Assembly (NCBI GenBank): GCA_004431415.1
Contig: QPMI01000058.1
Span: forward strand, 124,001 to 188,000
DNA: 64,000 bases
Source: Cyanophora paradoxa CCMP329
Taxonomy: Eukaryota > Plantae > Glaucophyta
Reading direction: 5' to 3'
Shown: one piece after another, positions 3,401-64,000 of the stretch
Layout: every line of letters begins with the position of its first letter
How positions within the stretch are numbered: position 1 is the stretch's first letter
The notes under the pieces: generated by a model
Databases searched by the model: none
Seen by the model: only the letters and a program-made list of their open reading frames with translations
Told to the model about the DNA's origin: nothing
Position numbers and translations under genes: made by a program

Positions 3401-4836
3401 GTGCTTGCGGGAGCTAAGAGCGGCGTCGGCGGCGTCAAGCGCGGCTTCCTGAACGGCGAGGTAGCCCATGTCGGCGATGACGTAGTCTTCTTCGGTAGTG
3501 TTGAGCTCGGCGTCTTGGAGCGCCTGTTCCGCGTCGCGCCAGAGGCCTGCAATCGTATCGCGCGCTTCGCGGCGGGCCGAGTCAGCGTGCGGGCGGGAGT
3601 GGCGGGCGATCTCTCTGTATTCGGCGAAGAGGTCATCGAGCCAGCGTTGCCAGTCTGCGGTGTTACGGGCCGGCTGGCGCGGGAGCGCGGCTGCCGTGAT
3701 CTTCCGGACTTCCCTCTGGAAGTCGGGCAGGCGAAGGACGCTATCGAGGAGCCGGAAGCGGGACTTGCGGGGCTCCAGCACGGCGTCGGTGTGCAGGCGC
3801 GCGTAGACGGCGTCGTGGTCGGGGCGTGGGGCCGCTCCCGCCGTGCGCAGGATGCCGACGCGTTCTGCGGCTACGCACAGATCAGCTGAGAGGAAGACGT
3901 GGTCGAGGCGCGCCGCGTTCTGGTCGAAGCGGTTCGTCTTGCGGTGCCATCGCGTGTAGATGCGGTCACGGGGGCGCCGGCGCCGGTGCTCATCGAACAG
4001 GTTCAGGTCTGCGAGGAGAGTTTTCCAGTGCCCGAACGGGGGCGGGGCACCGGCGCGGCGCCGGCTTTCTAGGTGCGGGAGTGCGTAGGCGTTGAGATCG
4101 CCTCCGAGGATGAGGGCGTCATCCGGGGGGATCGCCAGGGAGTCGATCGCTAGTGCTGCGCCCTCCGTGAGGCGCTTCTGCGAGGCAACGTCGTTAGGCG
4201 CGTATATACAGATGATATGGTACGCGTTCGTATCGCTCTCTAGGCGCAGGACTGTGAGGTCGTGCGGCGCGACGCCGGGCGTGGGGGGGAGGGGGACGAG
4301 CGTCGCTGTCGTTCCCGGGAGAGCCGGGATGTTCTTGCGGACGAGGAAGCCCGTTCCTCTGCTCCAGATGTTGGGTTTGAGCTCTGCGGCCGGTGGAATG
4401 AACACTCGCCAGGCGGAGTCGATGCGCTGGGCGAAGTGCGCGATCTGGCGCGGGCGGAGTCGGTGGTCTATGATGCCGAGGACGTCGACTTTGGTGCGTT
4501 TGAGCCAGCCTGCGAGCCAGATGCGGCGAGAGATGCCTGCGAGGCTTTCGACATTCAAAAAGGCGACCGTGAGGAGAGGACGGGACGTCGGGGCGTCCTG
4601 GGGCGCTTCCGACGTGGTCGCCGCCTCTTTGGCGGGACTTGCCGCCATGGGAAGGCGGCTGGGCGGCTGGGGGAGGCTGCAGCTCGCGTTCGGTTGAACT
4701 AAGCTACAGAGCGTCGGCCGCGCGAGTTTTGGGACCAGCCACGTGCAGTGCTAGCAGGCACCCGCGTTTGGGAAGCCCCACTGCGCCGGCTTACTCGCTC
4801 GCGGGCCTTCGCTCAATTTTCCGGGGTACCGGAATC
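401..4836 (-). mobile_element. Non-LTR retrotransposon (L1/Tx1-like), single APE-endonuclease/RT ORF, internally deleted 3' of the YADD motif
   Basis: Perfect 15-bp direct repeat attcgaatcgcatgt at 386-400 and 4837-4851 (TSD). T-run at 401-406 is the short poly(A) tail on the minus strand. Encloses the EN-RT ORF. Confidence 0.92.
1859..4648 (-). CDS. LINE ORF2-like protein: APE endonuclease plus reverse transcriptase, C-terminally disrupted
   Basis: EN motifs LNVESL, IYAPN, GGDLN, YT, RLDHVF, PDHDAV. RT motifs APGEDG, NWRPITLL, DFEKAYDRV, QGDP, YADD. Homology breaks after KYQKA; a GFAYPDL motif (GGLGxPDL-like) follows in another frame. Confidence 0.9.
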   Translation of the reverse strand: MAASPAKEAATTSEAPQDAPTSRPLLTVAFLNVESLAGISRRIWLAGWLKRTKVDVLGIIDHRLRPRQIAHFAQRIDSAWRVFIPPAAELKPNIWSRGTGFLVRKNIPALPGTTATLVPLPPTPGVAPHDLTVLRLESDTNAYHIICIYAPNDVASQKRLTEGAALAIDSLAIPPDDALILGGDLNAYALPHLESRRRAGAPPPFGHWKTLLADLNLFDEHRRRRPRDRIYTRWHRKTNRFDQNAARLDHVFLSADLCVAAERVGILRTAGAAPRPDHDAVYARLHTDAVLEPRKSRFRLLDSVLRLPDFQREVRKITAAALPRQPARNTADWQRWLDDLFAEYREIARHSRPHADSARREARDTIAGLWRDAEQALQDAELNTTEEDYVIADMGYLAVQEAALDAADAALSSRKHLERSLAHAHTVPPDLARHIKYSSANNRMRSLQPYPPSEGTPAATTEEDMAAYACAYYTELLAAQHPLPPDLPATPPQPQPLRSDPPAPPVPRAQEHSHARPATPAGSEPDGARSHASGSEPDDARPRTTTGPSGPVDVTPEAAEAFPAVVAKLRAAYLLTPEDPLSHEEAELLSRCTDTAPPHLCPPMRAPYTVGEVETCLKDMNKSTAPGEDGLTVKFYLTFWDILGPIVTESYNCARALGTLSERQRTGLIQLLYKKGDRDKIQNWRPITLLQIDRRLLGAVLAKRIAPACQHTISSSFMPACVQTGFMQDRCGSDNVWQMQAVIRHADRQGMHVVILNTDFEKAYDRVEHLYALRVLAVQGFPLEFLADVRAVTKGARSKLMINGTIFPIIIPVTRSALQGDPFACMFFNTQQEPTTRDILADPEITGVPAPREPRIESKLVQYADDAAHSLKIDHRSPDPGRPVKKTIAKYQKADSRTPTWRESRWRAPARWAPLRLPRIASAAPPSLL

Positions 4837-10449: not shown

Positions 10450-13400
10450 ATGATCAAACAATTGCTGCTCGTTGTGATCGCTTTTGTGTGCACGTGCACG
10501 CTGCAATATGTGGCTGGACAGACTAGTACTCCGCTGGTTGTCAGCACCATGTCGAGCTTCAACTGCACGGCGGGCGCGAGATGCGGTGTCAAGTGGACGC
10601 CGAGCACGACCTACGCCGAAGTCGATATCTCCGTCTGCCCGGCGGGACAGACGACCTACAACGCTTCCTGCGTGCTGGTGCGCTTTGGCCCGGCCCGCGG
10701 TCGGCGAAGACCTATAGCTATATAGCTAGGCCTGGCCATATGCATGCATGGGCCCTTCTAGACCTGTTAGCAGTGACACCCGGGTGTGTGACCGGCCGCG
10801 GCCGGCCCGGTGCACATGTACTTGCATAAAGAGACGATCGCGATAGACGTGAGCGAGGCACACCCTAGAACGTTAACGCATTCGGAATCCAGCTGCATTC
10901 ATTGCAAATTGCACCGCAAAGGCTCTAAGAGCACGTGCAGCCAAGGGGTACCGGTGGCTTGAGTTGCAGTACGTCGACGTCCTAGTTGCATGGAAGCTTA
11001 AGCTTTCATTTGAAACATTTGGCCATAGTCCGCGATAGCTAATGCAAGTAATTTTATAAGGACCGGCCCGGCGGCACCAGGCGACCAATATGGTGTCGCG
11101 GGTTTCAAAAGCGCTCTTGATCTAGATCTAGATCTCTGATCGGGGTTGATTGCAGGTGCACAGCGTGACGAGCACGAGCAACAACGGTGAGGTCGTGGTT
11201 ACGCTGCCCACGGGGCTCTTCGACTCCATCTGCGGAATCGCTTTCACGTAAACATCTGGCGGGATCTCGTCCCATGCACGTGCACGCGGCTGATGTGCGT
11301 CGCGCGCAGCGGGAGCTCGTGCGGAGCGACATGGGTAGTCGCGTCGCGCCGTTCCCCACGATCAGCGGATCTCGGGTGCTCACGACGCTGGGAGGCCGAC
11401 CGGTGAGCGTAGCCATTTGACCGCAGAGCGATCGCGAGAGGAAGATCTAGATCTGGAGTGCCCAGCTATAGAGCTGGTTCTCGACCAATGTCAATTTGCA
11501 TCCCCGGCCCGCCCCGCGCCACGCCCCCCCCCTCTCCCCCCCCTCCCCCCCCCCCCCCCAACCCAGGCCCCCCTCCTTCCCCCCCCCTCCCCCCACCGGA
11601 ACCCTGGCCCGGCCTCCAGCTTCAGTGGGTCCCCACCCCGCAGTGGGCCGGGCCCCCCTCCGCCACCCTTCCTTGATCGATTTTAATTTAGCGTTCAATT
11701 CTTCAAGCCTGCAGCTGTCGACGTCTGATGATATAGATTTATATCCGGATCCTTAATTTAAATGAGATTGGTCGTTCCGGATCGAGTGTCTCATTTACAA
11801 TCCGCCGGTCTGCGGCAGTTCGCAAATTGCTCATGAATGCTCAAAAAAGCGCGCAGGCGACCAGAGGCTGTACGTGAACGTGCTGGCAACGTCAGCGGCA
11901 ACCTGCATCATTGGGGCCGACTGCATGGTCAAGTTCGACAATATTTTCTACACGTGGGTGTATGTCTGCCCTTCGTACCAGACGACATACTCTTCAACGC
12001 TATGCATTGTTGTGCGCTCTTAGATTCTATAATCCGTCGCAAAGCTTTTTCACATCCGCGCTGATGAAGGACGCCTAACGTTAACAGGGGAGCGCGAATT
12101 CGATGACGGCCGGGGTGACCATTCCCGCCTCCATTATGGCGGCGACGATGTTTACTTCAATCTGCGGAACATCGGGGTGCGCTAATATTTATTCTCAGCG
12201 CATGCGCGCGCGACCGCGAGCTCGCGCCGAGGCCAGCGCTAGCCGCCGGCGCCGCGCTTCACAACTCTGAAGCGCAGTATACCACGATGCTAGCGCTACC
12301 GAATTACCGTTTGACTGAACTGATCATGCGATCGCCGACGCAGCGTTGCATGCACGGCAAACTTTGTGATTGCGAACGGCTACCCGCCCACCGATCTGCT
12401 CATCGTCGGCTACCGCAGCTTCACACTCAACCCGCGTGAGTTCTTCCTGCCGTGTTTCAGTCAAGGGCCGGCCGCTCGCGGCTGGTACGGTGCATTAGCA
12501 GGGAGCTTGGCCTGACTGCGATTCTTTAAAGCGAGCACTCCGCTGGTTGTCAGCACCATGTCGAGCTTCAACTGCACGGCGGGCGCGAGATGCGGTGTCA
12601 AGTGGACGCCGAGCACGACCTACGCCGAAGTCGATATCTCCGTCTGCCCGGCGGGACAGACGACCTACAACGCTTCTTGCGTGCTGGTGCGCTTTGGCCC
12701 GGCCCGCGGTCGGCGAAGACCTATAGCTAGGCCTGGCCATATGCATGCATGGGCCCTTCTAGACCTGTTAACAGTGACACCGGCCGCGGCCGGCCCGGTG
12801 CACATGTACGTAATATTCTTGCATAAAGAGACGATCGCGATAGACGTGAGCGAGGCACACCCTAGAACGTTAACGCATTCGGAATCCAGCTGCGTTCATT
12901 GCAAATTGCACCGCAAAGGCTCTAAGAGCACGTGCAGCCAAGGGGTGGCTTGAGTTGCAGTACGTCGACGTCCTAGTTGCATGGAAGCTTTCATTTGAAA
13001 CATTTGGCCATAGTCCGCGATAGCTAATGCAAGTAATTTATAAGGACCGGCCCGGCGGCACCAGGCGACCAATATGGTGTCGCGGGTTTCAAAAGCGCTC
13101 TTGATCTAGATCTAGATCTCTGATCGGGGTTGATTGCAGGTGCACAGCGTGACGAGCACGAGCAACAACGGTGAGGTCGTGGTTACGCTGCCCACGGGGC
13201 TCTTCGACTCCATCTGCGGAATCGCTTTCACGTAAACATCTGGCGGGATCTCGTCCCATGCACGTGCACGCGGCTGATGTGCGTCGCGCGCAGCGGGAGC
13301 TCGTGCGGAGCGACATGGGTAGTCGCGTCGCGCCCGTTCCCCACGATCAGCGGATCTCGGGTGCTCACGACGCTGGGGAGGCCGACCGGTGAGCGTAGCC

Positions 13401-16400
13401 ATTTGACCCGCAGAGCGATCGCGAGAGGAAGATCTAGATCTGGAGTGCCCAGCTATAGAGCTGGTTCTCGACCAATGTCAATTTGCATCCCCGGCCCGCC
13501 CCGCGCCACGCCCCCCCCCCTCTCCCCCCCCCCTCCCCCCCCCCCCCCAACCCAGGCCCCCCTCCTTCCCCCCCCCCTCCCCCACTGGAACCCTGGCCCG
13601 GCCTCCAGCTTCAGTGGGTCCCCACCCCGCAGTGGGCCGGGCCCCCCTCCGCCACCCTTCCTTGATCGATTTAAATTTAGCGTTCAATTCTTCAAGCCTA
13701 GGCCTGCAGCTGTCGACGTCTGATGATATAGATTTATATCCGGATCCTTAATTTAAATGAGATTGGTCGTTCCGGATCGAGTGTCTCATTTACAATCCGC
13801 CGGTCTGCGGCAGTTCGCAAATTGAATGCTCAAAAAAGCGCGCAGGCGACCAGAGGCTGTACGTGAACGTGCTGGCAACGTCAGCGGCAACCTGCATCAT
13901 TGGGGCCGACTGCATGGTCAAGTTCGACAATATTTTCTACACGTGGGTGTATGTCTGCCCTTCGTACCAGACGACATACTCTTCAACGCTATGCATTGTT
14001 GTGCGCTCTTAGATTCTATAATCCGTCGCAAAGCTTTTTCACATCCGCGCTGATGAAGGACGCCTAACGTTAACAGGGGAGCGCGAATTCGATGACGGCC
14101 GGGGTGACCATTCCCGCCTCCATTATGGCGGCGACGATGTTTACTTCAATCTGCGGAACATCGGGGTGCGCTAATATTTATTCTCAGCGCATGCGCGCGC
14201 GACCGCGAGCTCGCGCCGAGGCCAGCGCTAGCCGCCGGCGCCGCGCTTCACAACTCTGAAGCGCAGTATACCACGATGCTAGCGCTACCGAATTACCGTT
14301 TGACTGAACTGATCATGCGATCGCCGACGCAGCGTTGCATGCACGGCAAACTTTGTGATTGCGAACGGCTACCCGCCCACCGATCTGCTCATCGTCGGCT
14401 ACCGCAGCTTCACACTCAACCCGCGTGAGTTCTTCCTGCCGTGTTTCAGTCAAGGGCCGGCCGCTCGCGGCTGGTACGGTGCATGCGCAGGGAGCTTGGC
14501 CTGACTGCGATTCTTTAAAGCGAGCACTCCGCTGGTTGTCAGCACCATGTCGAGCTTCAACTGCACGGCGGGCGCGAGATGCGGTGTCAAGTGGACGCCG
14601 AGCACGACCTACGCCGAAGTCGATATCTCCGTCTGCCCGGCGGGACAGACGACCTACAACGCTTCTTGCGTGCTGGTGCGCTTTGGCCCGGCCCGCGGTC
14701 GGCGAAGACCTATAGCTAGGCCTGGCCATATGCATGCATGGGCCCTTCTAGACCTGTTAGCAGTGACACCGGCCGCGGCCGGCCCGGTGCACATGTACGT
14801 AATATTCTTGCATAAAGAGACGATCGCGATAGACGTGAGCGAGGCACACCCTAGAACGTTAACGCATTCGGAATCCAGCTGCGTTCATTGCAAATTGCAC
14901 CGCAAAGGCTCTAAGAGCACGTGCAGCCAAGGGGTGGCTTGAGTTGCAGTACGTCGACGTCCTAGTTGCATGGAAGCTTAAGCTTTCATTTGAAACATTT
15001 GGCCATAGTCCGCGATAGCTAATGCAAGTAATTTATAAGGACCGGCCCGGCGGCACCAGGCGACCAATATGGTGTCGCGGGTTTCAAAAGCGCTCTTGAT
15101 CTAGATCTAGATCTCTGATCGGGGTTGATTGCAGGTGCACAGCGTGACGAGCACGAGCAACAACGGTGAGGTCGTGGTTACGCTGCCCACGGGGCTCTTC
15201 GACTCCATCTGCGGAATCGCTTTCACGTAAACATCTGGCGGGATCTCGTCCCATGCACGTGCACGCGGCTGATGTGCGTCGCGCGCAGCGGGAGCTCGTG
15301 CGGAGCGACATGGGTAGTCGCGTCGCGCCCGTTCCCCACGATCAGCGGATCTCGGGTGCTCACGACGCTGGGGAGGCCGACCGGTGAGCGCAGCCATTTG
15401 ACCCGCAGAGCGATCGCGAGAGGAAGATCTAGATCTGGAGTGCCCAGCTATAGAGCTGGTTCTCGACCAATGTCAATTTGCATCCCCGGCCCGCCCCGCG
15501 CTACGCCGCCCCCCCCCCCCCCCTCTCCCCCCCACTCCCCCCCCACCCAACCCCTTCCCATTTCCCCCCCCCCTCCCCCGCCCAACCCAGGCCCCCCTCC
15601 TTCCCCCCTCCCTCCCCCCCACCGGAACCCTGGCCCGGCCTCCAGCTTCAGTGGGTCCCCACCCCGCAGTGGGCCGGGCCCCCCTCCGCCACCCTTCCTT
15701 GATCGATTTAAATTTAGCGTTCAATTCTTCAAGCCTGTAGACGTCTGATGATATAGATTTATATCCGGATCCTTAATTTAAATGAGATTGGTCGTTCCGG
15801 ATCGAGTGTCTCATTTACAATCCGCCGGTCTGCGGCAGTTCGCAAATTGAATGCTCAAAAAAGCGCGCAGGCGACCAGAGGCTGTACGTGAACGTGCTGG
15901 CAACGTCAGCTGCAACCTGCATCATTGGGGCCAACTGCATGGTCAAGTTCGACAATATTTTCTACACGTGGGTGTATGTCTGCCCTTCGTACCAGACGAC
16001 ATACTCTTCAACGCTATGCATTGTTGTGCGCTCTTAGATTCTATAATCCGTCGCAAAGCTTTTTCACATCCGCGCTGATGAAGGACGCCTAACGTAACAG
16101 GGGAGCGCGAATTCGATGACGGCCGGGGTGACCATTCCCGCCACAATAACGTCAGCTGCGATGTTCAATTCCATCTGCGGACCATCGGGGTGCGCATACG
16201 TATACGCATGCGCTTGAGCTTGCGATGACGAGGTTGGACTGGATGTACTGATCATGAGACCGGTACCTCTGGCGCATGCATATGCAGAAATTCGTGCAAG
16301 GCGAATTACGTGATTGCGAACGGCTACCCGCCCACCGATCTGCTCATTGTCGGCTACCGTAGCTTCATTTTCGAGCTGTGTACGCAATACGAGTTCTTGC

Positions 16401-17152: not shown

Positions 17153-18460
17153 CGGGGCTATCCCGCGTGTTGTTGCGGGCGAATTCGAAATCTTAGGCGG
17201 CTGCAGCCTTAGAGAATTTACTGTTCGTAGAGACCCGGGTTCAATTCCGGCAGTTCGCTTCGGCGTGCTTAGAGACTCGGGTTCGAATCCAGCGGCTCGC
17301 TTTTCATAAGTGTCTGAGCCGTCTGATTGGATCATATGATCTGATCATGAGAGCTTCGGACGGACAGCGTGAGGGCTTTAAGAGCCCGGCGCGTGCGTGT
17401 TTAGAGGGATTTTGCCATTCCCGGAGACCGGCCTAGTAGAGAGACTAGAGTAGTGAAACTCTGTCGGATCAAATCTACGAGTACTGTCATACTGCTGAAC
17501 CTGCATCACTCTGGGGCCGGTCTTGCACTCACTGCAGGTCAGATTCACTCTATAACCTGTTGTCTAGAATCCCGTGCCACCCCTAGGGCACCGGAATGGG
17601 GATTCACAGCTGGGCATGCGCAGCCACAGCACAGCACAGCGGGGCGAACATGACTTCCAATTTTGCAAACCGCGAACGCATACGTGTATGTCTTAGACCT
17701 CGCAATCAAAGTGAACGACGATAGCTATAGCTATAGGCAACTCTGCTTTATGGCCGCGGGGCCCCCGCCCCCTCCGCTTCCGCCTCCGCCTCGGCAAGGA
17801 ACGGAAGGGCCCAGGGGACCGCCCCCTCGGGCACGGCCGCCGCGGCCGACGCCGCCGCCCCGCAGAGCTCCGCCGCCGCCGACGCCGCCGCGCGCTGCTG
17901 CGCGGCAACCGCCGCCTGCGGATGCGGGGCGGGTCACGATCGGGCCGGGGCGGGGCGGGCGGGGCGGGCGGGCGGGCGGGTCGGGCTTGGCGGGAGGGGC
18001 GGGCCTGGATCCCGGAGCCGGCGCGCCGCGGCGGCGTCCCCAAAGAAGAGAACTGCGTCCAGCGTGGCCCGCAGCGCCGCTAGCGCTGCGCCGCCCGGCG
18101 TCGGCCGCGGGCGCGAGCGGCGCTGGGGCGGGCGTGGGGGGTACCCGATGTCTCGGGCGGGGGCGAGGCGAGGGCGCGCAGCTCTTCCTGCAGGCGCTCC
18201 TCCTCCTGCGGGCGGGCGGGGGGTACGTCATCTCATCTCATCTCATTAGGCGCTCAGATAGGGGGGGGGGAGAAGGCCCCGGAGGGGAGGGGGGTACGCG
18301 CGCCTCGGAGACGACGCTGCGGGTCTCGAGGTCGTCGAGGGCGCCCCCCTCGCCGTCGGCCGCGGCGCCCGCCCCCGCGTTCGCCTCTGCGTGAACGAAG
18401 GGCGCGTCAGAGGGTGGCGGCGTAGGAGGCGATATCAGATTCTCTCTTTGTCTCTTTTCA
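17153..18460 (-). pseudogene. ELP1: Duplicated 3' end of ELP1 with 3' flank; carries a ~430-bp insertion and a ~520-bp internal deletion
   Basis: Matches 29130-29765 and 30285-30475. Encodes EEERLQEELRALA...WALPFLAEAEAEAEGAGAPRP*. Confidence 0.9.
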
Positions 18461-28683: not shown

Positions 28684-29309
28684 ACACCGTATATATACCT
28701 ACCGCCCCGCCTGCGCGCGCGTGCTCGCACTTTCTCTATAGCTAGATCTCGCAATTTTCGTCTAGATCTAAATCCCTGTTTGTGTCATTCCGGTACCGTA
28801 TACGTAGCTATAGTACTGTCCTTCAAGGCTTCTATCCGCAGTGTTTCATGATCAGTTGGAAAAAGTCAGTGCAATATTCGAGTTAATTTATTACAATTAA
28901 TTGACGGATCATATGAGCGAATTCGAACTAATACATGCACGTAATCTGCACCCGTGCTCCATTTATAATTGGTTCCTTGTATTTCGACGTCCGAAATGCC
29001 AGCGCGGCCATTGGATCTAGAGGCCTATCTATAGGGGGCCTAGGGGGCACGGGCCCGGCGGGGCGTTGAATACATTAAACTATTGCGAAGGGCCGACTTT
29101 GAGTGTTTTTAACGCTATAATTACATACGCGGGGCTATCCCGCGTGTAGCGCGCGCAGGGGTCGGGTGCACAGCTGGGCATGCGCAGCCACAGAACAGCA
29201 CAGCGGGGCGCGCGAACATGACTTCCAATTTTGCAAACCGCGAACGCATACGTGTATGTCTTAGACCTCGCGATCAAAGTGAACGACGATAGCTATAGGC
29301 AACTCTGCT

Positions 29310-32300
29310 TTATGGCCGCGGGGCCCCCGCCCCCTCCGCTTCCGCCTCCGCCTCGGCAAGGAACGGAAGGGCCCAGGGGACCGCCCCCTCGGTCGCCGCC
29401 GCCACCGCCGCCGCCGTTGCCCCGCAGAGCTCCACCGCCGCCGCCGCCGCCGCACGCTGCTGCGCGGCGACCGCCGCCTGCGGAAGCGGGGCGAGTCAGA
29501 GGCGGGGCGAGTCAGGGGCGGGGCAGGGCGGGGCGGGGCGGGAGGGGCGGACCTGGAGCCGGCGCGCCCCGGCGGCGTCCCCGAAGAACAGGAGGGCGTC
29601 CAGGGTGGCCCGCAGCGCCGCTGCGCCGGCCGGCGTCGGCAAGGGGAGGGGGGGGGAGAGTGGGGGGTACCCGATGTCTCGGGCGGGGGCGAGGCGAGGG
29701 CGCGCAGCTCCTCCTGCAGGCGCTCCTCCTCCTGCGGGCGGGCGGGGGTACGTCATCTCATCTCAAGGGAGAGCCTCGGAGAACGGGGGACGCCGCCACT
29801 TCTAGAACGGAAGCTCGCTAGCGCCTCCGCCACGTGCACGCCACGCCCCGCTCCTCCTAGCTGGGGGCCTAGTTTCCCCGCCTCCGTCCTACCTAGGAGA
29901 CCTAGTCCCCTAGAGGGAAATCAAAAAAGGGGGGGTACCTTCGCGAGGGACTCGGCCATCTTGCGGGCTCGGGCGACGGGGTCCTGGCTCCGCCGCCCCT
30001 TGGCCGCTGCGTGGCGGCCCGGTTCGAAGGGGCTGGTGGGTGGGTAGGCGGGACGGGCGGGACGGGGCGGGCGCACGGGCGGGGCCGCGCGTCGAGCTCC
30101 AGCTGAAGACGCTCCGGCTCGAGGCAGCAGACGCGAAGCTGCCCTGCTGCGACCGCCGCCCGTTAGGCTTCGGATCGAGGAAGAGGAGGCGGAGGAGGGG
30201 GCTCTGGTACCGAGCTCGAGCCGCTGACGGCGCTGCCGGCCTCGCTCGGCGCAAGCGTGCTCGCCTGCCCCGGCGCTCGGTTAAGGGGGAAGGGGGGAGA
30301 AGGCCCCGGGGGGGGGGGTACGCGCGCGCCTCGGAGACGACGCTGCGGGTCTCGAAGTCGTCGAGGGCGCCCCCCTCGCCGTCGGCCGCGGCGCCCGCCC
30401 CCGCGTTCGCCTCTGCGCGAGCGAAGGGCGCCTCAGAGGGCGGCGGCGTAGGAGGCGACAATAGATTCTCTCTCTTAAGTGTTCAAATTAATGAGACGAT
30501 TCAGAGTAAAATTGCGGAGGGCGGCGCACCGTAGAAAGCGGAGGCGGCTCGGCGGGCGTCCCGCGCGGCCGGCAGGCGCGCCGCGAGGAACGCGAGCCGC
30601 CGGCCCTTCTCCTCCGCCTGCCGGGGGGTAAAAGGAGGGCAGGAGGGGGGATGAATCGGCGGGGGGTACGTGCCTCCTGGAGGCGCTGGGTGACGGCCTC
30701 GGAGAGGCGGGGGCGGATCTCCGACGCCGCGAGGTCGCCCCGCCCCGCCCGCGCCGCCTGCCCCCGCGAGCCGCCCTAAGCAGCCGGGGAGGAGGCGAGG
30801 GGGGGTACGGCACCAGGTCGAGGGCGGCGTCCCACGCGTCGCACTCGGCGAGGGCGCGCACGGCCGCCTGGCGTACCCCTCAGGGTGGCTCTTTGGGGGG
30901 GGGGGAGAGAAGGAAAAAAGGGCGCCTCGGTATCCCCCGCGAGGTCGGCGAGGGCCATCGCCGCCTCCTCGTTCCGCCCCGCCGCCCTCAGCACCTGTAC
31001 CCCCCGGACCCGGCCCACCCGGCCCGGCGTCAAAAACGTGCGCTGTACCCCCTCAGCTGAGCCCTAAAACGGCGCACGGCGGCGAGGTCGCGCCCGAGGG
31101 CGGCGGTGCGCTCGGGCCCGGCGCCGAGGCGTGAGGCGAGCGCGCAGGCCGCCCGCCGCTCGCCGGCCGCCACCAGCGCCGCCAGCGCCGCCGCCTCCTC
31201 CCCGCACGCCAGGAGCGCTGCAGGGAGAGCGGGGCGGTCAGTCGAGAAGGAAGGAAGAGAAGAGGATTGGAGAGAAGAGAAGGGCGCGCCGCGGGCGGCG
31301 TCGGCGTGGCGGGCGGCGGCGGCGAGGGCCCGGCCGTGCTCCCGCAGGACCGTCCGCCAGCGCCCGTCGTCGTCCGGCGCCCCGGCCTCGGGCGGGGGGT
31401 ACAGCCGCGCCCCGAGCTCCGTCTGCCCGCTCTCCTGCGCGCACGCGCGCGAGACAGGTCGAATAAGATCCGGGAACGGTAACGGGACCCGCCGGGGCTC
31501 GAACCCGCATGTACTCGAGGGCCTCGCCGAAGCGCGCGGGGCCGGCGCGGGCGATGTTTGCGAGCGCCCGCGCGTGCCGCCCGAGGTGCCGGTCGATCGT
31601 GAAGCGCTGGTACGCCGGCTCCCGCGCCAGTTCCTGCGGGGGGGTACGCTCGTTTCAGGATTTGTCTTTTTTGGGGGGTACGACGCGGCCCGGCGCGCCT
31701 GCAGGGAGGCCAGGAAGGGCAGGTACTGCTTCGGGTCCCACTGCGAGGCCTGCCGGGGAGAAAAAAAGGGGGGATCGGCCGGGGGGGGGGGATGGAGCTG
31801 CGGGGGGTACGGGGCACCTGGGCGACCATGAGGGCGAGGTTGAGGTCGTAGAGGCCGAGCGCCGCCGCGTACAGCCGCTCCGAGTCGCACAGGAAGATCA
31901 GGTACCTGTACCCCCCTCGCTCAGGGGGGAAATTCTAAAGGGAGGAAGGTGGGAGGGGGGTAGGGTCGCACGCGAGGGCCTGCTCCGCAGTGGGCTTGCC
32001 GTCGCCGGGTCCCTGCGGGGGGGCGGCGTCGGAGCCGGAAGGGGGGGGGAAGGAGGGGTAGGGGGGTACGGGCGCACGTCGTCGGCGGGGGAGTCGGCGC
32101 CGAAGTCGTCCGCGGCGGCGGCGGCGGCCCGCGCGGCCGCCTCCCGCTCTGCGCGAACGAAGATTAGAAAGGGGGGGGGGGAAGAGGGGCGGGCGGGGGT
32201 ACGTGCCGCGGAGGGCAGCGACGCGGCGGAGGGCGCCCTCGACGTCGGGGGGCTCCCGCCGCACCAGCGCCGTCAGCGCCGAGAGCAGGAACCTGCCCCC

Positions 32301-35300
32301 GCCCCTCAGCCGAGCCAGCGGGGGTACCGGTTCGAGGCGGGCGGGCGTTTGCCTGTCGGGGTCCGCAGCGTCGAGGGCGGCGCGGATCGCGTCGCAGGCC
32401 GCGTTCCGGCCCGCCCTGTTGTTTGCGTGGCTCGGCGTTAGCCGGCGCGCGCAGGGCGGGCGGCAGAGGCCCGGGGAGGGAAGTACGCTCGCCTGAGGGA
32501 GGAGAGCAGCAGGTTGATGTGGTCCACCGAGTTCACCTGCGGGGGGTGCCGTCAGAGACAGAGAGGAGGGGGGAGGGAGGCCAGGGGGGTACGGTACGCG
32601 CCTGCTGGACGATGGCGGGGCAGGAGGCGAGGAAGCGCTCGGGCGAGTGCTCGTAGAGGAGCGCGAGGTCCACGCGGTGCGAACGAAGCTCTCGGAACGC
32701 CGCCCCGTATTCCCCCCTGGAGGGTGGAAGGAGGGGGCATGAGATTCGAAGGGGGGATGGGGGGGGGGGGGAGAGGAAGACGAGGGGTACCGGTTGAGGT
32801 GCGTGCGGGCCGAGTCGAGGACGAGGGCGCGGGGGTACACCGTCTCCAGGTTGCCCCGCGGGGCCTGCGGGGCAGTTCGAATCAGAACGGGGAGGGGACC
32901 GGAGGGGGGGGGGGGAAGAAGGCGGGGAGGGGGGGTAGGGTCGCCTGGAGGACGACGCGGGGGTCGTCGCGGGCGGCGGTGACGAGGCGGCTGCCGCGCT
33001 CAATGGCCCGCGTTGTGAGGCCTGTCCAAGGCGGAGGCGCGTGAGTCGCAGCGAAGGGAGAAGGTCTAAGGGGGCTTTCAGGTACCCCCCAGGGCCGCCG
33101 GATCTGCGGCGAGGGCGGCCAGGTCCGGAGCTGCGGCGCGCGCGGGTCAGCCGGCCCGAAGGGAAGCCGGCCGGGGAGGGGTACAGGGACGGGCCGTCGA
33201 GGGGTAGGACGCGGAGGGAGGCGGGGCGGGCGGTAAAGAGGAGGTGGCCCCCGCGGGCCGCCGCGCTCGTCGCGTCCGAGGCCACCAGAGCCCCGTCCAC
33301 GTACAGGCGCCCCCGCTCCTGGAGGCACACGAGCACGTCCCGCCCCGGGGAAGGCGTCGCCACCGCCAGCCGGGCGCAGGGCGCCGGCAGCGGCGGCAGC
33401 GCCTCCAGCGCGACCGGGCCGGGCGCCGGCTCCGGGCCCGGAGAGCACGCGAAGATCGCGCCGTCCGTCCTGCGGCAGCGGTAAACAAACAACAGCCGAA
33501 GGAGCACAGGGGGGTACGGGGCGCACGCGAGGACGTAGAGGCGCCCCGTGGGGCCCGAGAGGGCTACGGCGGCCGCCGTTCGGTTGCCCGGCAGCTGCGG
33601 CGCGCCGCGGCTCGGCTCGGACCGGGCCGGGCGGGGGCGGGCCCAGGGGTACGAGGATACGGGCGCACGGGGGTACGGGCGGTGCCGAGGACCGGTGCGG
33701 GGTCCCCTTCTCCGAACCAGATCTGAAGGGGGGGGGGGGGGGGGGGGGTCAGGCGCCCGCGGGGAAGGAGCGGCGGGGGGTACGTGTGCCTGGAGGAGGG
33801 CGTCGCCGCAGGGGGACACCCCCGAGGGCCCCGCGACGCAGACGAGGGAGGAGGGGTACGGGAGCGCGGCGTGGCGCGCGCGCTCGAGCCCGGCGGGGCG
33901 GCGAAGGACGGCGCGGGGCGGGCTTGACAGCGCCGCCCCGTCCGCCGCGTCGGGCGGGCGATCGTACGCCAGGAGCGTCCCGTCGGAGAGGAGCACAGCG
34001 AGCGAGCCGTCCGGAGCCCACGCCACCTGAGAAGAAAGGGCGTCAAGCAGGCGGGAGGAGAGGGCGGGGCCGGGGGTAGCGGGGGTAGGGCGCGCCTCGG
34101 AGGCGGGGGAGGGGAGCGAGAGGACGCTTCCGCACATGGGCGGGGGCACCACCGCGCGCCGCAGCGGCGTCAGCAGCACCCGCGCTGCGGCCCTGCCTGA
34201 GAAGAGAAAAACAGGGGGGGAAAAAGCAGGGGTAGGGGGTACGCGCACCGCCGTCGATCACGGCGGCGGCGGAGCTGCAGGGGTACGACGGCGACGCCGT
34301 CGCGTCGCTGACGGCCACGTCCCACGCCAAGTCGAAGCGCGCGTACCCCCCGTCTGGCCGGCCGCGGTCAGGAGGGGGGGGGCGGGGGGTACGCGGCACC
34401 GCACCGGCGCAGGCGACGTGGAGGCGGTAGGGGCGGACGGGGTCCCATCGGAGGGCGGCGGGCGGGGAGGCGAGCCTGGCCTCGGCCTTGAGGTACCAGT
34501 GGCCGTTGGAGAAGGAGTAGAGGTGGACGAGGCCCGAGCCGACGTCGCCCTCACCAAAGGCGACGGCTAGCACGTCCGACTCGCCGCTCCAGTCGAGGGC
34601 GGACGGGCGCCCCGCGCCCCGCAGGCCGCACTGCCCGTGCCGAAGCCCGTTCCGCTCGAACATAGAGAGAACAGGCTCCGACGACGTTCCCGCCGGCGCA
34701 GCGGGGGCCGGGGCGCCGGGCGGGCGGGCCGCCGCAGCGGCCGCCGAAGGGGGCGGCCCCGGCCGGCGCTTCTCCGGCCCGGGAACGTTCGTCATGGGTA
34801 CGGCGATCAGGTTTCCGGAGGGCCTGCGCGGCGGGCGTCGGGGGGATGGAGCGGGTGGGGGAAGGAGCAGGAGCAGGGGGTACCGCCAGGAGAGGGGCCC
34901 CAGGATCGCGCCGCCCTCCTCCCCGCTCGAGTGGGGTACCCCTCGCGCGAGAAGACGCGCAGCCGGTACGCCCCTGCGAGCGGCTCGTGAGGCAGACGCG
35001 GGGCGCGGGGCGCGGGGCGCGGGGCGGGCGGACCGCCGGCGGAGGGGTCCGGAGCGGAGACGGCGAAGAAGCGGCCGTCGCCGCGCCAGGAGATGTGGGC
35101 GCGGGAGCCGGCGGGGGCGAGCGCCGGCTCGGGCCCCGGGGCGCCGCCGTGCAGCGGGCGCTCGGCGAGCACCTCCCAGCCCTTGGTCATCACGACGAGG
35201 CCCAGGGCGCCCGTGACCAGAGCCAGGAGCTCCTGGTCGGGCGCCCACGCCGCGCCCAGCAGACCCGAGTCCACGTCGCCCACGCATTCAACCTGCCGCC

Positions 35301-44497: not shown

Positions 44498-44744
44498 AGT
44501 GTTGCAGTATGTTGCAGTAGCATGTACCCCCCAGACATTTCCTTGTACCCCCCAGACATTCCCTTTTAGATCACGAGGACGTGATCTCGTGGAGGGGGGA
44601 GTTGTTGTAGTAGGATATACCCCCCAGATAGATGTACCTGTACCCCAATGATACTATGGTATCATTGGGGTACAGGTACATCTATCATGGTATCATTGGG
44701 GTACAGGTACATCTATCTGGGGGGTATATCCTACTACAACACTA
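44498..44744. mobile_element. Foldback/MITE-like element containing a ~52-bp-arm palindrome
   Basis: Termini tagtgttg and caacacta. The arm at 44603-44654 is inverted at about 44690-44741, with an extra partial arm between. Not present in the paralogous segment near 45535. Confidence 0.65.
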
Positions 44745-56699: not shown

Positions 56700-58652
56700 T
56701 CAGGTGCGCTCATTTTTGATGGCCAGGGCAGCTTGAATGTCCTGGGGCACAATTCGCGAGCGCCGAGCGTGAAGCCCCGCGATATTGGCGGCGCGGAAGA
56801 CCTCCACGAGGTAGTTCTCAGCGGCGAGCTGGAGGGCCAGGTACGCGTTGCGCGTGAAGCCTGTCGCGATGCCATCCGGCAGCCGCAGACGCTCCGCGCC
56901 GGTTTTTCCTTCGGCCGCGCGAGCCTCGCACTCGCCCCGGCGGGCTTCGCGCTCGGCCTTCAGAATCTCTCGCGCGAACGGGCGGAACGTTTCCTTGCGG
57001 ATGAGGAGGCGGCGCGTCTTCTGGTAGTGCCTGCAATATTTAATCGCAATCAGAATTTTCAAAAACCCAATTAACAACAGCGCGAATTCGAAGAAATATT
57101 AAAATTTCGCACTCAATCTGGGCGAGTGCGATGGCACCAGACGTGACGTCGACATCATCGTCCTGTATACACGTAGATGCGCCACATTAAACAATTTGCG
57201 AATAGCAGTATTTGGGATATCGATATCGATAGTATTTGGCTCACTCCTTCGCCGGCACCCTCGCCCTCGTCGTCATCGCTCTCGTCATCGGGGATGAAGC
57301 CAATGCACTGCTCCAGCTTCCGCTTTGAGTTCGGCTTGATAGAGCACGTGCACGCGTGTGCGTCTGCGCATGCGATTAATTATAATGAATAATATGCAAG
57401 TGCAAAGAAATTGACAGCGTACCGTGCTGGCTCTCATCCTCCTCGCTACCAGACTCGTTCGAATTCTCTTCGAATTCGTCCTCTACAATTAAATTGCGAT
57501 CAACGGGGCCGCGGCGGGTCCGGAATATTAACGCAGCGACGCGCACGCGCAAAGCATTTTGAGCGCATAAATAATAAATATACGCACCATTAAGTTCCCC
57601 CTCGTCGATGTCGTCGCCAGCTTGCCGTTGAAAATTCAGGTCAACCACGCGCTCGTTTTCTGCAACTGCTTTCAAATGTGAATTGAATTGAATACGGTGC
57701 TCGATTGCGAAGGCTCGAGTGGCCCGGCCCGGGCGGCGAACTCTCGTCATCTGATTCCGTGTCATCAAGCTCATCAAGCTCCGCATCAGACTTAGCATCT
57801 ACATCGGACTCGAGCTCCTGCGCGACCTTCAGCTCGGTGACAGCTCGTTATATTGCGGGCGAACCTTGAATTTGAAACGTTAATGGATTGCGTGACCATA
57901 AAACCGCGCATATTAATACCGCGCATATTAATATTCGGCGGCGTGAGATCTAGAATTGAGCAGTGCTGAATTAAAGTAACACGCACATCTTCGTGGTCGC
58001 TCTCGTTATCGCTCGAATCTGCAGCCGACGATTCGTCTTCCGCACCTTCGGAATCCTGCGCGCGCATGCACGCGCGCGTTCAAAGCTCGCTTACGAAAGG
58101 AAATTAAAACTCAAGCACGAAGCGCACGTTTTCATCGTCGCTCTCGATCTGCAGCGGCTCCTCCGCGGGCGAAATGCCGACGTCGACACGCCGAGCCAGG
58201 CCGAAAAAATCCGGTGAAAGCTCCTCGACCGGCGCTCCCGAGGGAGCGACGACAATGGTGACGTGCGGATCCTTGATGTACTCGCGAAAGCTCAAGTCGA
58301 ACTTGAAAGCCTGCGCGAAATTGCGATCAATTCAATTGCGAATTTTCGCTGCCCACAATGCATGCGCATGCGCAAATCCCGCGGCTCCGGGCACGTGCAT
58401 GCGCGAGTGCACCTTATTGTTGAGCTTGTTGAAGCGCCCGGTGTGTGGCAGGAATTGCCAGGCCTTCACCGCATCGCCGCTGACGTTGCAGTCCAGGGCT
58501 TCAAGGTCTTCCGCCTTGAGCGCCGCAAGCAGCAGCGGGGTGGTGAGCGGGAGGCCGCCGGAGAACTCCACCAATTGCCCATCCTTGGAATTGTGACGAG
58601 CGTCCGATGAGAGAGCAGGGTGCACGTAGATTGTGGCGCTCTCGCTCGCCAT
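56700..58652 (-). CDS. Divergent histone H3-fold protein (399 aa): N-terminal globular region, long Asp/Glu-rich linker, C-terminal H3 fold with extended loop 1
   Basis: Nine GT-AG exons join in frame (1200 nt): 58652-58413, 58310-58128, 58055-57987, 57817-57742, 57659-57588, 57482-57423, 57363-57245, 57162-57113, 57030-56700. C-terminus GAIALAQIEHYQKT..LLIRK..F..FAREI...ALQLAAENYLVEVF..ANIA.LHARR..I.PQDIQAA..I..ER aligns to H3. Confidence 0.85.
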
Positions 58653-59233
58653 GGATCGACGTGAGCTCGCTGCGCGACGTGTGATTTCTGCCGCAGTGCT
58701 GCGATCGCGACTCTGGAGGGCAAAATCAAATTTTGAGCGGTCTAGCTATAGCTAGCTAGCTTTAGCTAGAGAAATATATATCGAGATCAAGAAGAAGGCT
58801 TAAATAACGAGATTATGACGTCTTCGTTCGAGAGAATTAGTTATAAGAGAGAATCGAAGGCTTTAATTATAACAACGAGAAGTACGACGTTCGAGAGAAA
58901 GGAACTGCAGAATTTAGAAATTGAGTGGATCGGAGTGCGGGGGCGAGCATGGGGGGAGCGGGGGAGCGGGGTGAGGATGGGGGGGGGCGGGGGGGGGGGG
59001 GGGGGGGGGGGGGGGGGCGGTCATGATCATAAGATGGTTTCTCAGCGGTCATGAGGAGCTATAGATCGAGAGGAGCCGGCAAGAAGGTAACGAGGTCTCC
59101 ATTGCATTTCAAGATTCTTCAACAAGGAACCGGCAGCGAGCAAAGCTATTCTCACTCTACACCGCTAAAATAGGACAGGGCGAGCGCATCGCGGGCTGGG
59201 TTCGAATGCGACTTCGAAAGCGACCGAAGGGCC

Positions 59234-61222
59234 TCAGCGGCGGCCGGGCCCGGGCTGCTTCTGCTGCTTCTGCTGGTCCTTCTCCTCGTCGCGCGCGGCC
59301 CCCGCCGGGCGGCACCAGGGGGTACGGTCGTCGTCGCACAGGAGCTGCCGGAGTACATGCAGTGGGTCCAAGCGGGCTACAGTGATTTTAGATTTCGGGT
59401 ACCTGGACGGAGTAGCGGATGGAGCCCATAATGAAGGGCTGCAGATTCGAGAGCCAGTACCGGGTCTCCCCAAGGCCCTTTACCCGGTCCACGCCCTGCG
59501 AACGAAGCTCAGGGGGGTACGTCGACGAAGGGAGGAGGGGGTAGGGAAGGGAACCTTGAGGGGGCCCTCGGGCCGCCGGACGGGGGTGGGGTACCCGTCA
59601 AAAGTCTCGTAGTAGGGGCCCGTGTACTGCATTCTCCCTTAGCGGCGGCGGGGGAGCGGGGCGGGGGTACGGGATCACCTTGGAGGAGTCCAGCTTCGGG
59701 CGCTCGGCGGGCCACAGCTGGAGGGGGAGTGGGGGAGTGAGCGGCGGGGGGGTACGCGAATGAATCAGGAGTGGGGTACCCCGTGGACGTCGAGCTTCTG
59801 CTTGAAGAGGGGCCAGTGGTACGGGAGCCCCCAGCCGTCCGTGGGGAAGCCTGGCGAGGGATCGCAAAGCGCATCCGAAAGAGGGTCCGGCGGGATTCGA
59901 AACCACACCGTTGACGCGGATGAGCGTCTCGCGGGACACGACCACTACCCCCCCGAAGTACTTGTCCGCACCCTGGGGCACGGGTACGTAAGAAGCGGCC
60001 CGGGTACTGGAAGCAAAGGAAAGGAGGCTCGCCTCGCGGGGGTGGATGCCGCCCGGGGTAACGTGGAAGACCTGAGGCGGGGTACGGTAGGTCGGCGGCG
60101 AAGCCTCAAAACCGCGCAGGCCGCTGGGGATTCGAACCTTCTCCGGAAGGGCCTTGATGAGGCACGGGGCGTCCTTGACGGGTACGATATCCATCTCTGG
60201 AGGGCGTATGAATCAGAATAACTCAGGGGAGGGGAGGGGAGGGGGAGGGGGAGGAGAGGGAGGGCGAACCGTGGAAGACGTAGTAAGCGTAGTCGGAGTT
60301 AAGGAGATTGTGCTTTTAAGAGGGGGGAAGGGGGGGGGGGAAGGGGGGGGGAGCGCGTCAGCGAGGTACCGAAACCACGAGGCCGCGCGCGGGGGCGGGG
60401 CGGCGGGGCTCACGAGGGCCGTGTTGAAGAGCCCCCCGTAGTTGAAGTACGTCGTACCCGTCTGCTCGAAGAAGAAGACGGTGTACCTGCGCGCGAGGGT
60501 TCGAATCCGGGCGGGGCCCGTTTCCCGCCAGCGGGGCACGCGCTTCATGGGCTGCTTGTCGAGGCTGGGGAGGAGGCGCTCGAGGAAGCGGCGTGCACGG
60601 TCCTCGTCGCCCCTGTACGGCACGATCACAGCGAGCTTGTCGACCTGCGATCGAATTCGATCCGGCGGCCGGCGGGAGCCCCCGCGAGAGCGCGAAAGTG
60701 GTTCACTCGCCTTCTTGCCGCTGTTGCCCGCGAAGTCTGCATTCCGAGCGAGTCAGACAAGCGGCCGCGGGCGGCTCCGGGGCGGGGCGCGGGCCAGCCG
60801 CCGCGCACCGATCCACATCTGGAGCAGCGCGCGGTGCGACCGGAGCGTCTGGGCCCAGGGCGAGCCGCCCTCGCCAGCCTCGACCTCCTTCTTGAGCGCG
60901 TTCAGGCGCTCAATCTCGCTGTTGCAGAGCTCCTTCCGCGCGTTCGAGTCGCCGCTGCAGTCGTCGGACCAGTAGCCCTCGTCGAAGCCGTCCTGGCCCC
61001 ACCCAAACTCGCTGTCATACGTCTGCTTCACCGAGACCATCAAAAGGAACATGCAGATGCTGCGCCGCCGGCCCGCGGTTAGCGCGCCCCGGCCACGGTT
61101 CCGGCTGCGCCGGGAGCGGTGCACCCGAATGCCATGAAGAGACCGCGCATCAGCCGCTGTCCGCGTAGGAGATCCGCGGCCCTGGCCCGCAGGCCGCTCA
61201 CTCTCGCGGGACCTGGCGCCAT
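59234..61222 (-). CDS. Glycosyltransferase family 7 (beta-1,4-galactosyltransferase-like), type II membrane protein
   Basis: N-terminal TM LFMAFGICMFLLMVSV. KLAVIVPYR, FEQ...FNYGGLFN, DYVF, MDIVP, KYFGGVV, VNG..N...GWG. Confidence 0.85.
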
Positions 61223-61372: not shown

Positions 61373-62910
61373 ATGTCGGGGTTCGTGGCCGGCGCGCTCA
61401 GCGCCTCCCAGCAGCAGCGTACGCAAGCTTTCAGTTCGTCATCCGCGCGCCTTCGGGATGCAGCGGCTGGGCAGGCGCGTGCGACCTGCACGGGCTGCGG
61501 AAGCCACGCGTGCCTCTGCACGCCCAGCTACGGGCGGCAGCAGGAGCGCAAGCAGCTCAAGTTCGCGGCCCGGAATCCCGGCATGGCGTCGTTCGCCGGG
61601 CTTCGGCCGACCAGCCGCCTCGGCCGCACGCTCCGCCGCAGCCTGGAGGGGAGCGACCCGAACGCCGAGTTGCTGCAGCTTGCTTCCTCCGCCCGCGGCG
61701 AGGATGCCATCTCCCTCGTGCCGCGCGCCGTGCTCGACTTCATCAAGAATCTGATCCCGGGCAAGTCCAAGTCAAGCTCGAACGTCTCCGCGTTCCAGGG
61801 GCGGGTGCGGCCTGCTTTGTTGCACCCGCGGCAGCTTAGCTCGCGCGCTAAGTCTGACGCCCCGCGCGCAGGTCAAGCAGATCAACGAGCTCGAGAGCCA
61901 GCTGAAGGACCTGTCGCTGGATGAGCTCAAGGAGCGCTCGCTCGCGCTCCGCAAGCGCGTGAAAGAAGCCGCCGACGAGAGCGCAGCGATGAACGAAGTG
62001 CTGCCCGAGGTGCGACCGCCTCCGACCGCGCCACCTGCGCGCGTCGCTCCGGCGCCGACAGCGGCGGCGCCGCGCGCGCAGGCGTTCGCACTTGCGCGCG
62101 AGGTCTCGCGTCAGGTTCTGGGCCTCCGCCACTTTGATGTGCAGCTCATCGGTGGCATGGTCCTCCACGAGGCGAGCCGCCCGCGCTCCAGCGCCCAGCG
62201 CCGGAACCCGCTGACGCCGCCGGCAGCGCCGCATCGCCGAGATGAAGACCGGCGAGGGCAAGACCCTCGTCGCCACGCTCCCCGCGTACCTCAACGCCCT
62301 CTCCGGCCGGTACCCCCCTCCTCTCTCCGCCTGCCGCGCCCCGCCCGCCCCGCCCCGCCGCCGACGCCGCGCGCCCGCGCGCCTCCCAGCGGCGTCCACA
62401 TCGTTACTGTGAACGACTACCTCGCCCGCCGGTTCGCCCCCCCCCCTCCCCCACAACAGCTTTGCTCCAGTACCCCGGCCGAGCGCGCCCCCCCCGCAGC
62501 GACCAGGAGATCATGGGGCAGGTCTTCCGCGGCCTCGGCCTCACCGTCGGCCTCATCCAGGTCCGCGGCGTACCCCCGAGCGGCGCGCTTCGTACCCCCC
62601 TGACTATGGTACCCCCCAGAACGGGATGGAGTCGGCCGAGCGCCGGAGCGCGTACGCCTGCGACATCACCTACTGCACTAACAGGTGATAGATCGCGTAC
62701 CCCGCTCGGGTACTCGTCCCCTCTCCCTCAAGCTCCGGTACCCCCCAGCGAGCTCGGGTTCGATTACCTGCGCGACAACATGGCGCTGGAGCAGAAGGAC
62801 CTCGTGCAGGTTCGAACCCCGAGGGGCCCCGAAACGCTCGCCCGCGGCGCCTGGCCCGCGCCGATCGAACGGCGTACCCCCCGCAGCGCCCCTTCAACTT
62901 CTGCATCGTG

Positions 62911-62942
<32 letters not shown>

Positions 62943-64000
62943 GCGTACCTGTACCCCCTTCGAGCCCGCCCCCTCCCTCCTCACTTTCGCCCGCCACTCC
63001 TTTTGTGCAGGCGCGGACGCCGCTCATCATCTCGGGCCAGGGCGACCTCAACGTCGACCGCTACAAGGCGCGTACCCCCCCCCCTCTGCTCCCCCCCTCT
63101 CCTCCCCCCCCCCCCTCTCCTCTTAAAGTTTTCTGCGAAGGTTGCGGCATACGTGGCGGACCAGCTCCGGAAGGGGGTCGACTACGAGGTACCCCCCGCC
63201 TAAGCTAAGCTCCTGAGCTTCCGTTCTCATCTTCCGCCCGACAGGTGAACGAGAAGCAGAAGAGCGCCCAGCTGACGGACGGCGGCTGGCGCGCCATCGA
63301 GGGCATGCTCGGCGTCTCCGCCGACGTGCGTTCCCGTGCCCGCGCCAGCCCTTGAGAAGAAGAAAGAAGCTCACAGGAGCTTTTAGAGGCTTATGAAAGA
63401 AGACCTTCTAGCTCATCTCATCTAAGCCCGCATGCCTGCCTTCCTGCCTTCAAATTCGTTCGCAGGCGGACATGCAGGCGCGCGCCAACTTCATCTCGGA
63501 GTGGTCCGACTACTGCAACGCCGCCATCCGGTAGGGCCCTCTCCTCCCTCCCCCTCCCGCCCTCCCTGCTCTCCCTCCCGCCGCCCCCGCGCCGCTGCTC
63601 TGACCAGCCGGCGCGGCGCAACAGCGCGAAGGAGATCTTCCTGAAGGACAAGCAGTACATCGTCAAGGCAAGCGCGCGAGCGAGCGCGGGACCCCGCCCC
63701 CATCCCTCACACCTCACTCACCCTTATCCCCCTCTTCCCCCGCCAGGACGGGGAGGTGGTGATCGTGGACGAGTTCACGGGGCGCGTGATGCCGGGCCGC
63801 CGCTGGTCCGACGGCCTCCACCAGGCCATCGAGGCCAAGGGTCCGTCCGCCCGTGAAGTTGACGAGGCTAGGCTCATAGCTTATATAAGCTTCTTTAAGC
63901 TCCCTAAGCTTCTTTAAGCATATACAAGCGCTTATTTAAGCTTCTTTAAGCGGCCTCCACCAGGCCATCGAGGCAAAAATAGAAATAAGCTTCTTTGAGA
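61373..64000 (+). CDS. secA: Plastid preprotein translocase SecA, 5' part; continues beyond the window
   Basis: [102 protein letters not shown]. Leader MSGFVAG. Confidence 0.97.

Follow-up and report, generated by a model that had tools for sequence, protein, structure and literature searches.

A Cyanophora paradoxa histone H3-fold protein with an acidic linker in place of the basic tail

Introduction

Histone H3 is among the most constrained of eukaryotic proteins, and its variants nearly always keep the basic tail. Residues R40, R42, R49, R52, K53, R69, R83, T118 and K122 of H3 contact DNA, and R129 is a contact of Asf1. Histone folds are also found within non-nucleosomal complexes, as in the TAFs, NF-Y and yeast UAF. 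In macroH2A, a fold of the H2A type is combined with a basic linker and a macro domain.

L126 of H3 is a further Asf1 contact (PMC11775587), and R83 and T118 have been named as DNA contacts (PMC9145170). The centromere histone CenH3 (CENP-A) is recognized by a long loop 1, by three sites that no longer carry Q, F and T, and by phylogeny (PMC4359364). The CenH3s of red and green algae have a basic alphaN, RW or RY at positions 83-84, mostly A, S or C at position 68, and a loop 1 only 0-2 residues longer than that of H3; CPAR010062, a conventional candidate from Cyanophora, combines Q68A with a short, basic tail (PMC5579357 Dataset EV1). The H3 variants CPAR026130, CPAR004349, CPAR004798 and CPAR022740 come from the same organism (van Hooff et al. 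2017, PMC5579357). H3-like proteins with long, non-tail N-termini have been listed elsewhere: two H3s from phycodnavirus MAGs carry about 170 residues of unassigned N-terminus (PMC9145170), and the H3-like protein PMAR020858 of Perkinsus marinus carries a D/G-rich extension (PMC5579357 Dataset EV1). Here we describe a Cyanophora gene in which an H3 fold follows a globular-looking domain and a strongly acidic linker.

Results

Structure of the gene

The gene lies in a 64,000-nt stretch of the Cyanophora paradoxa CCMP329 genome (the window), to which all coordinates refer. At 56700-58652 on the minus strand, nine exons joined into 401 codons with no internal stop when the spliced model was checked for frame. 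All eight introns were GT..AG and 59-169 nt long, with donors of the GTGCG/GTGAG type, and the single Met of the spliced frame was located in exon 1. The least certain junction was the intron-4 donor, GTTCGC at 57741, which is the sole usable GT in the required phase. The parts are as follows.

Exon 1, 58413-58652, minus strand: the only Met and the first 80 aa of an orphan N-terminal domain (N-domain); no RNA cover.
Exon 2, 58128-58310, minus strand: remainder of the N-domain (a helix and a final strand that closes with HVTIVVAP), followed by the first part of the linker; no RNA cover.
Exon 3, 57987-58055, minus strand: acidic linker, 48% D/E; no RNA cover; absent from the public gene model.
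Exon 4, 57742-57817, minus strand: acidic linker, 56% D/E; no RNA cover.
Exon 5, 57588-57665, minus strand: acidic linker; an RNA contig (57662-57588) is spliced onto exon 6.
Exon 6, 57423-57482, minus strand: acidic linker; RNA contigs of run X15 show both junctions.
Exon 7, 57245-57363, minus strand: a short Cys-containing, basic NLS-like SKRK patch and the most acidic stretch.
Exon 8, 57113-57162, minus strand: last linker residues, then the first half of an alphaN stripped of charge (R40, Y41, R42 and R49 lost).
Exon 9, 56700-57030, minus strand: H3 fold (alpha1, long loop 1, alpha2, alpha3) and the stop codon.
Loop 1, 56859-56957, minus strand: 33 residues vs 7 in H3 (+26).

The protein thus divides into a globular-looking part (residues 1-135), an acidic linker (136-275) and an H3 fold (the last 118 residues). 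A first-pass annotation, made from the sequence, had proposed a clean nine-exon frame, this order of parts with a D/E-rich linker of about 140 aa, and the absence of an H3 tail; all three hold, and the acidic linker stands in the tail's place. Residues 136-275 contain 58 D/E and seven basic residues in 140 aa, and the net charge of the whole protein is -53, as compared with +20 for canonical H3. Each linker exon has 26-56% D/E in the modelled frame vs 0-16% in the other two plus-sense frames. The SKRK patch of exon 7 could act as an NLS. No histone stem-loop was found after the stop codon, and Rfam returned no match.

RNA evidence and the public gene model

The whole window was present in 14 sequencing runs of one organism; six probable RNA runs contained 6-14% of its words. 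RNA depth at the gene was 2-5, and the contigs are read here for presence only. Exon 9 was represented by RNA contigs in all four runs examined. RNA-derived contigs of two runs matched the modelled ends of introns 5, 6, 7 and 8 to the base: the junction of exons 6 and 7 was found in contigs of run X15 and that of exons 7 and 8 in run X18, where a single contig spans exons 7, 8 and 9. The gene is weakly expressed, and it is spliced at exons 5-9. The confirmation of junctions that the first-pass annotation had called for was therefore obtained for introns 5-8, but exons 1-4 are uncovered: no RNA contig of four probable RNA runs fell within 57665-58900, the region of exons 1-4 and introns 1-4. 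The joining of exons 1-4 to exons 5-9 rests on sequence. We assigned the four exons to the gene because the frame has a single Met, because exons 3 and 4 are D/E-rich only in the modelled frame, and because the public gene model also joins exons 1 and 2 to the fold. One further contig of run X15 covers 57454-57582 with intron 5 unspliced, two differing letters and a loose end; it may be pre-mRNA, an error or a second, diverged copy.

The gene corresponds to Cyanophora paradoxa tig00000219_g19488.t1 (g19488) in EukProt, with a 100% match over exon 1, whose 80 aa are the same as residues 1-80 in the public model. That model is 297 aa long; it includes exon 2 but leaves out exons 3-6 together with some of exon 7 (58127-57340). 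It is wrong in skipping these exons, since RNA contigs use exons 5, 6 and the full exon 7.

Residues kept and lost in the H3 fold

Exon 9 matched the core histone family (PF00125, E 2e-12), the sole family matched in the Pfam search, and its best H3 match in the PDB had an E value of 2e-11; the best 60 PDB sequences for the fold were all H3. Identity to H3 was 49%. The large hydrophobic positions of H3 were still hydrophobic in 27 cases of 29, vs 75% expected by neutral drift (P about 0.004), and the substitutions in the fold were milder than the neutral expectation (P about 0.02). Only 14% of neutral simulations at the same divergence left the 92-codon fold free of stops.

The basic positions fared differently from the core. 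From K36 onward, eight of 19 were still basic and 11 were lost, R40, R42, R49, R52, K53, R69 and K122 among them; the DNA contacts R83 and T118 were replaced as well. Specific replacements were Q68R, R69P, R83G, E105R, T107A, T118R, K122Q, L126A and R129A, with Q68R and T107A as stated in the first-pass annotation; R63, K64, R72, F84 and R116 were kept. On the H3-H3' face H113, R116, D123, A127 and I130 were retained, and L126 and R129 had both become A. K36 and K37 were replaced by D, and K4, K9, K27 and K36 of the canonical basic tail were absent. The locus therefore encodes an H3-type fold with an H4-binding core that lacks the basic tail and the DNA contacts R40, R42, R49, R69, R83 and T118. 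This pattern suggests a fold kept able to bind H4, with its grip on DNA lost and that on Asf1 probably lost. A long helical extension of alpha1 was predicted at residues 200-227 of the public model, in a structure model of low confidence.

Loop 1 has 33 residues as compared with seven, in agreement with the roughly 26 extra residues first claimed. Within it, an in-frame 75-nt segment (56935-56861) starts GCGAGT and ends CAG, and its removal leaves an 8-residue loop 1. The insert may be a former GC-AG intron whose donor decayed and which is now coding; other GC donors in the stretch likewise give in-frame options. The insert was unspliced in RNA: it was crossed in runs X16 and X17 and entered in X15 and X18, with one contig beginning at the exon-9 acceptor and crossing the entire insert. 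An unrecognized GT-AG intron was considered and rejected, as the 71-nt candidate shifts the frame and RNA reads through it. At the same position of loop 1, a canonical H3 from a metagenome (one locus, 837-1193) carries 27 extra in-frame codons that look like an intron, which shows that an intron can reside here and, when retained, pass for a long loop.

Comparison with CenH3

Three of the features by which CenH3 is known were present, namely a longer loop 1 and the absence of Q68 and of T107, and the N-terminus is non-canonical, as in CenH3/CENP-A proteins including CPAR010062. One hallmark, which the first-pass annotation had not mentioned, was missing: F84 is identical to H3. The fusion protein also differs from these proteins in the loss of R83 and of the basic alphaN, in an insert of 26 residues vs 0-2, and in a net acidic N-terminal region with a globular domain. 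A Foldseek search with a weak structure model returned H3 entries at E 0.02-0.09, and the CENP-A entry ranked ninth (E 0.51). The CenH3 and Cyanophora variant sequences of PMC5579357 Dataset EV1 were compared by eye; the H3-fusion gene was not among the sequences of this data set. T107A was seen in four Cyanophora H3 variants that retain Q68 and F84, and the replacement is therefore not diagnostic in the Cyanophora genome.

The first-pass annotation had suggested that the genome be checked for another CenH3, and the published CPAR010062 is such a candidate. Its old model, as read by eye, breaks in loop 1 and runs into MCM-like sequence, leaving position 84 uncovered; it is probably a mis-joined old gene model. 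With F84 kept, best matches to H3, the basic alphaN gone and CPAR010062 in existence, the proposal of an unusual CenH3 found poor support, and it is unlikely that the gene encodes the centromere histone.

Relatives and origin

Searches were made with single exons, or with the public 297-aa protein g19488.t1 and its parts. In a set of 5.8 billion proteins exon 1 had no hit, and exon 9 and the public protein had no close relative (one of these searches was run at the strict cut-off of 1e-5, and a length window applies); viral contigs yielded no relative either. Among 50% representatives, exon 1 matched only itself and three unrelated repeat proteins, and g19488.t1 is the sole member of its 90% cluster. 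All of the 81 loci retrieved, the best 80 from metagenomes and one from a virus, encoded H3 of the canonical type with normal loops, the exceptions being one retained intron and one three-residue insert. Seven metagenome loci encode the H3.2 sequence common to animals; they are probably not human, and they were left out of the later analysis. A baboon H3-like protein was used only as the second row of one alignment.

The residues T57, V103, A107 and T135 of the fold occur in three, none, one and one of 63 canonical H3s, respectively. By eye, all four were present in the Cyanophora variant CPAR026130, and two or three of them in CPAR004798, CPAR004349 and CPAR022740. The sharing of four rare residues with CPAR026130 points to an origin of the fold from the divergent H3-variant family of Cyanophora. 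These variants have in common with the fusion protein the H3 fold, F84, T57 and A107, and some of them also V103 and a C-terminal ERT (by eye). Unlike it, they retain Q68, the arginines of alphaN and a tail that is short and basic, their loop 1 departs from the canonical length by no more than about one residue, and they have neither acidic linker nor N-domain.

Among more distant systems, macroH2A (size given in PMC9145170) likewise links a histone fold to a non-histone globular domain; the present protein differs in being an H3 with an N-terminal extension and an acidic linker, and no macro domain was matched. The uncharacterized phycodnavirus and Perkinsus proteins resemble it in placing an H3 fold after a long non-tail extension, which is acidic in one case. 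No sequence link to them was found, and the Perkinsus protein differs in its W84, its ordinary loop and a basic patch ahead of alphaN. With long foreign or acidic N-termini already on record for other H3-like proteins, we regard the layout as unusual but not as a category of its own.

The N-terminal domain

The part of the N-domain encoded by exon 1 was predicted to be beta-beta-alpha-beta-beta. In AlphaFold models of low confidence (pLDDT 47 and 38) the N-domain showed a beta-grasp strand order, in full in one model and similarly in another. The named Atlas look-alikes were all ubiquitin-like (TDP-43_N, Ubiquitin_GT-1, GRHL1_C, PB1 and CIDE-N; scores 0.76-0.78), fold searches with the pLDDT 38-47 models returned no match, and exon 1 had no match in Pfam, the PDB or viral contigs. 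A ubiquitin-like N-domain is tentatively taken as a lead, not a result.

Crinkler headers end in an HVLVxxP motif where other domains join (PMC5289972). The N-domain resembles such a header in its N-terminal position, its predicted beta-grasp order and its last strand, HVTIVVAP. It is unlike one in that no LxLFLAK motif and no Pfam match were found and in that the fusion protein has no toxin domain, and we treat the likeness as resemblance only.

Surroundings of the locus

The gene sits in an AT-richer island (56% GC vs 68-75% in host genes). The neighbouring features are as follows.

Below 56220: an intron-containing host-type gene of no assigned family, on the lower side.
59000-61100: a family-7 glycosyltransferase-like gene with a weak Pfam match, on the upper side.
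61373-64000: a SecA gene, assigned by motif, beyond the glycosyltransferase-like gene.
32500-35300: farther away in the window, the host gene ELP1.

No terminal repeats, target-site duplication or element genes were found around the gene; the matches seen there were 9-10 nt long, scattered and wrongly ordered, and flanking inverted repeats were dismissed as chance. The gene does not qualify as mobile-element cargo at this locus.

Repeats were observed elsewhere in the window. A 929-aa ORF at 1859-4648 has the endonuclease and reverse transcriptase domains of a LINE-type retrotransposon. At 10500-16200 a unit of about 2.0 kb is repeated three times in tandem, with large parts 98-100% identical among the copies; one ORF of these units had no Pfam match. 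A 260-nt direct repeat (17727-17986 and 29289-29548; 87% identity, 11.5 kb apart) begins near-identical ORFs in both copies and encloses an AT-richer stretch in which the ORFs tested had no Pfam match; this region is possibly an insertion with a duplicated gene start. An inverted repeat at 44603-44741, within an AT-rich stretch at 43.4-45.7 kb, has 59-nt arms that are 97% complementary and 21 nt apart, and holds a 31-nt tandem duplication.

Discussion

We tentatively favour, at a little short of an even chance, a lineage-specific H3 paralogue that is tailless and self-chaperoned and acts as an H4-binding decoy or as a weak-wrapping H3. A copy of an H3 variant would have been rebuilt as N-domain, acidic linker and H3 fold. 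The fold would pair with H4, as judged from its hydrophobic core and from the retention of H113, R116, D123 and I130. The loss of R40, R42, R49, R52, K53, R69, R83, T118 and K122 would leave a weak grip on DNA, and K122Q, L126A and R129A would allow escape from Asf1-type handling. The acidic linker, covalently placed where the tail would be, could act as a built-in chaperone by covering the dimer's basic surface. Either a soluble sink for H4 or a loosely wrapped particle lacking the modifiable K4, K9, K27 and K36 would result: a chromatin decoy that might oppose silencing or tune histone supply, with a possibly ubiquitin-like N-domain providing targeting or self-association. That the H3 fold and the acidic exons belong together follows from the open frame and from four junctions confirmed in RNA. 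The first-pass suggestion of an H3-fold protein with a built-in chaperone or DNA-mimic region fits the anatomy and is carried on, as a putative function, in our leading reading. The RNA depth of 2-5, the uncovered exons 1-4 and the low-confidence structure models count against this reading. Conservation of the linker and N-domain gains no support, since no homologue with this layout was found in the protein, viral and metagenome sets searched, and the selection signal in the fold may have been laid down earlier in the gene's history. Nor does an anti-silencing role have a target nearby, element ends and element genes being absent on both sides.

The main rival, which we consider unlikely but well worth weighing, is a young or relaxed chimera that drifts with no present selected function. 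On this account a copy of an H3 variant, an upstream domain and acidic low-complexity exons were brought together by shuffling, the loop-1 intron was exonized and transcription is low; the genome is gene-dense and intron-rich, with 29% repeats (Price et al., PMC6704402). The orphan status of the gene, alone in its 90% cluster, the low RNA depth and the replacement of numerous conserved H3 residues (R69P and E105R among them) are consistent with drift, and a decayed GC-AG intron can account for the loop insert. Drift would not readily leave 401 codons and eight usable introns intact, however: few of the neutral simulations stayed free of stops over the fold, hydrophobic positions were kept beyond chance, and the losses hit DNA-binding rather than core residues. 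A more specific proposal, which we hold to be improbable, makes the protein the H3-side mirror image of macroH2A: a tailless histone with a built-in acidic chaperone and a ubiquitin-like domain for targeting or polymerization, deposited free of Asf1 into loosely wrapped nucleosomes on which silencing marks cannot be placed, and either domesticated by the host or derived from an element as an anti-silencing histone.

The lost DNA-wrapping arginines, the lost L126 and R129 of the H3-H3' face and the predicted alpha1 extension, which could be a docking surface, would also suit a subunit of a transcription or remodelling complex that pairs with H4 or an H4-like partner and never enters a nucleosome; Pfam matched the core histone alone, all sequence matches were true H3 and no partner gene is adjacent, so that we give this account only a slight chance. 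Slighter still is the chance that two genes were mis-joined, with exons 1-2 (or 1-4) encoding a separate small protein and the H3-fold transcript starting downstream, for example at a +1-frame ATG of exon 4 with intron 4 retained. The gap in RNA contigs over 57665-58900 and an ORF at 57798-57376 that runs in frame into exon 5 would fit. Against it, exons 3 and 4 are 48-56% D/E solely in the modelled frame, ATGs are the expected by-product of GAT-GAG runs and the spliced frame has no further Met, and the public model likewise joins exons 1-2 to the fold; even if the genes were mis-joined, the junction of acidic linker and H3 fold, seen in RNA contigs, holds. We regard as least probable an unusual CenH3 that marks centromeres and recruits kinetochore proteins through its N-terminal part. 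The long loop 1, the loss of Q68 and T107 and the divergent N-terminus would agree with this (criteria in PMC4359364), and long CenH3 tails are known (170 aa in Cyanidioschyzon, over 520 aa in Dictyostelium; PMC9145170). The kept F84 and lost R83, unlike the RW/RY and basic alphaN of the red- and green-algal proteins, the preference of PDB and Foldseek for H3, and the published conventional candidate all argue the other way.

The value of the finding is limited by its being a single-species orphan of low expression whose proposed function is read from sequence. An anti-silencing, macroH2A-like tailless H3 would, if true, be of a kind undescribed in eukaryotes as far as our searches reach. The long loop 1 of this protein may have arisen via intron exonization, and the rule that calls CenH3 from Q68, T107 and loop 1 misfires in glaucophytes. 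The gene is an experiment of nature that bears on two questions: whether a chaperone-like acidic region is able to function in cis, and how far the DNA-binding charge of an H3 can fall with pairing to H4 still intact.
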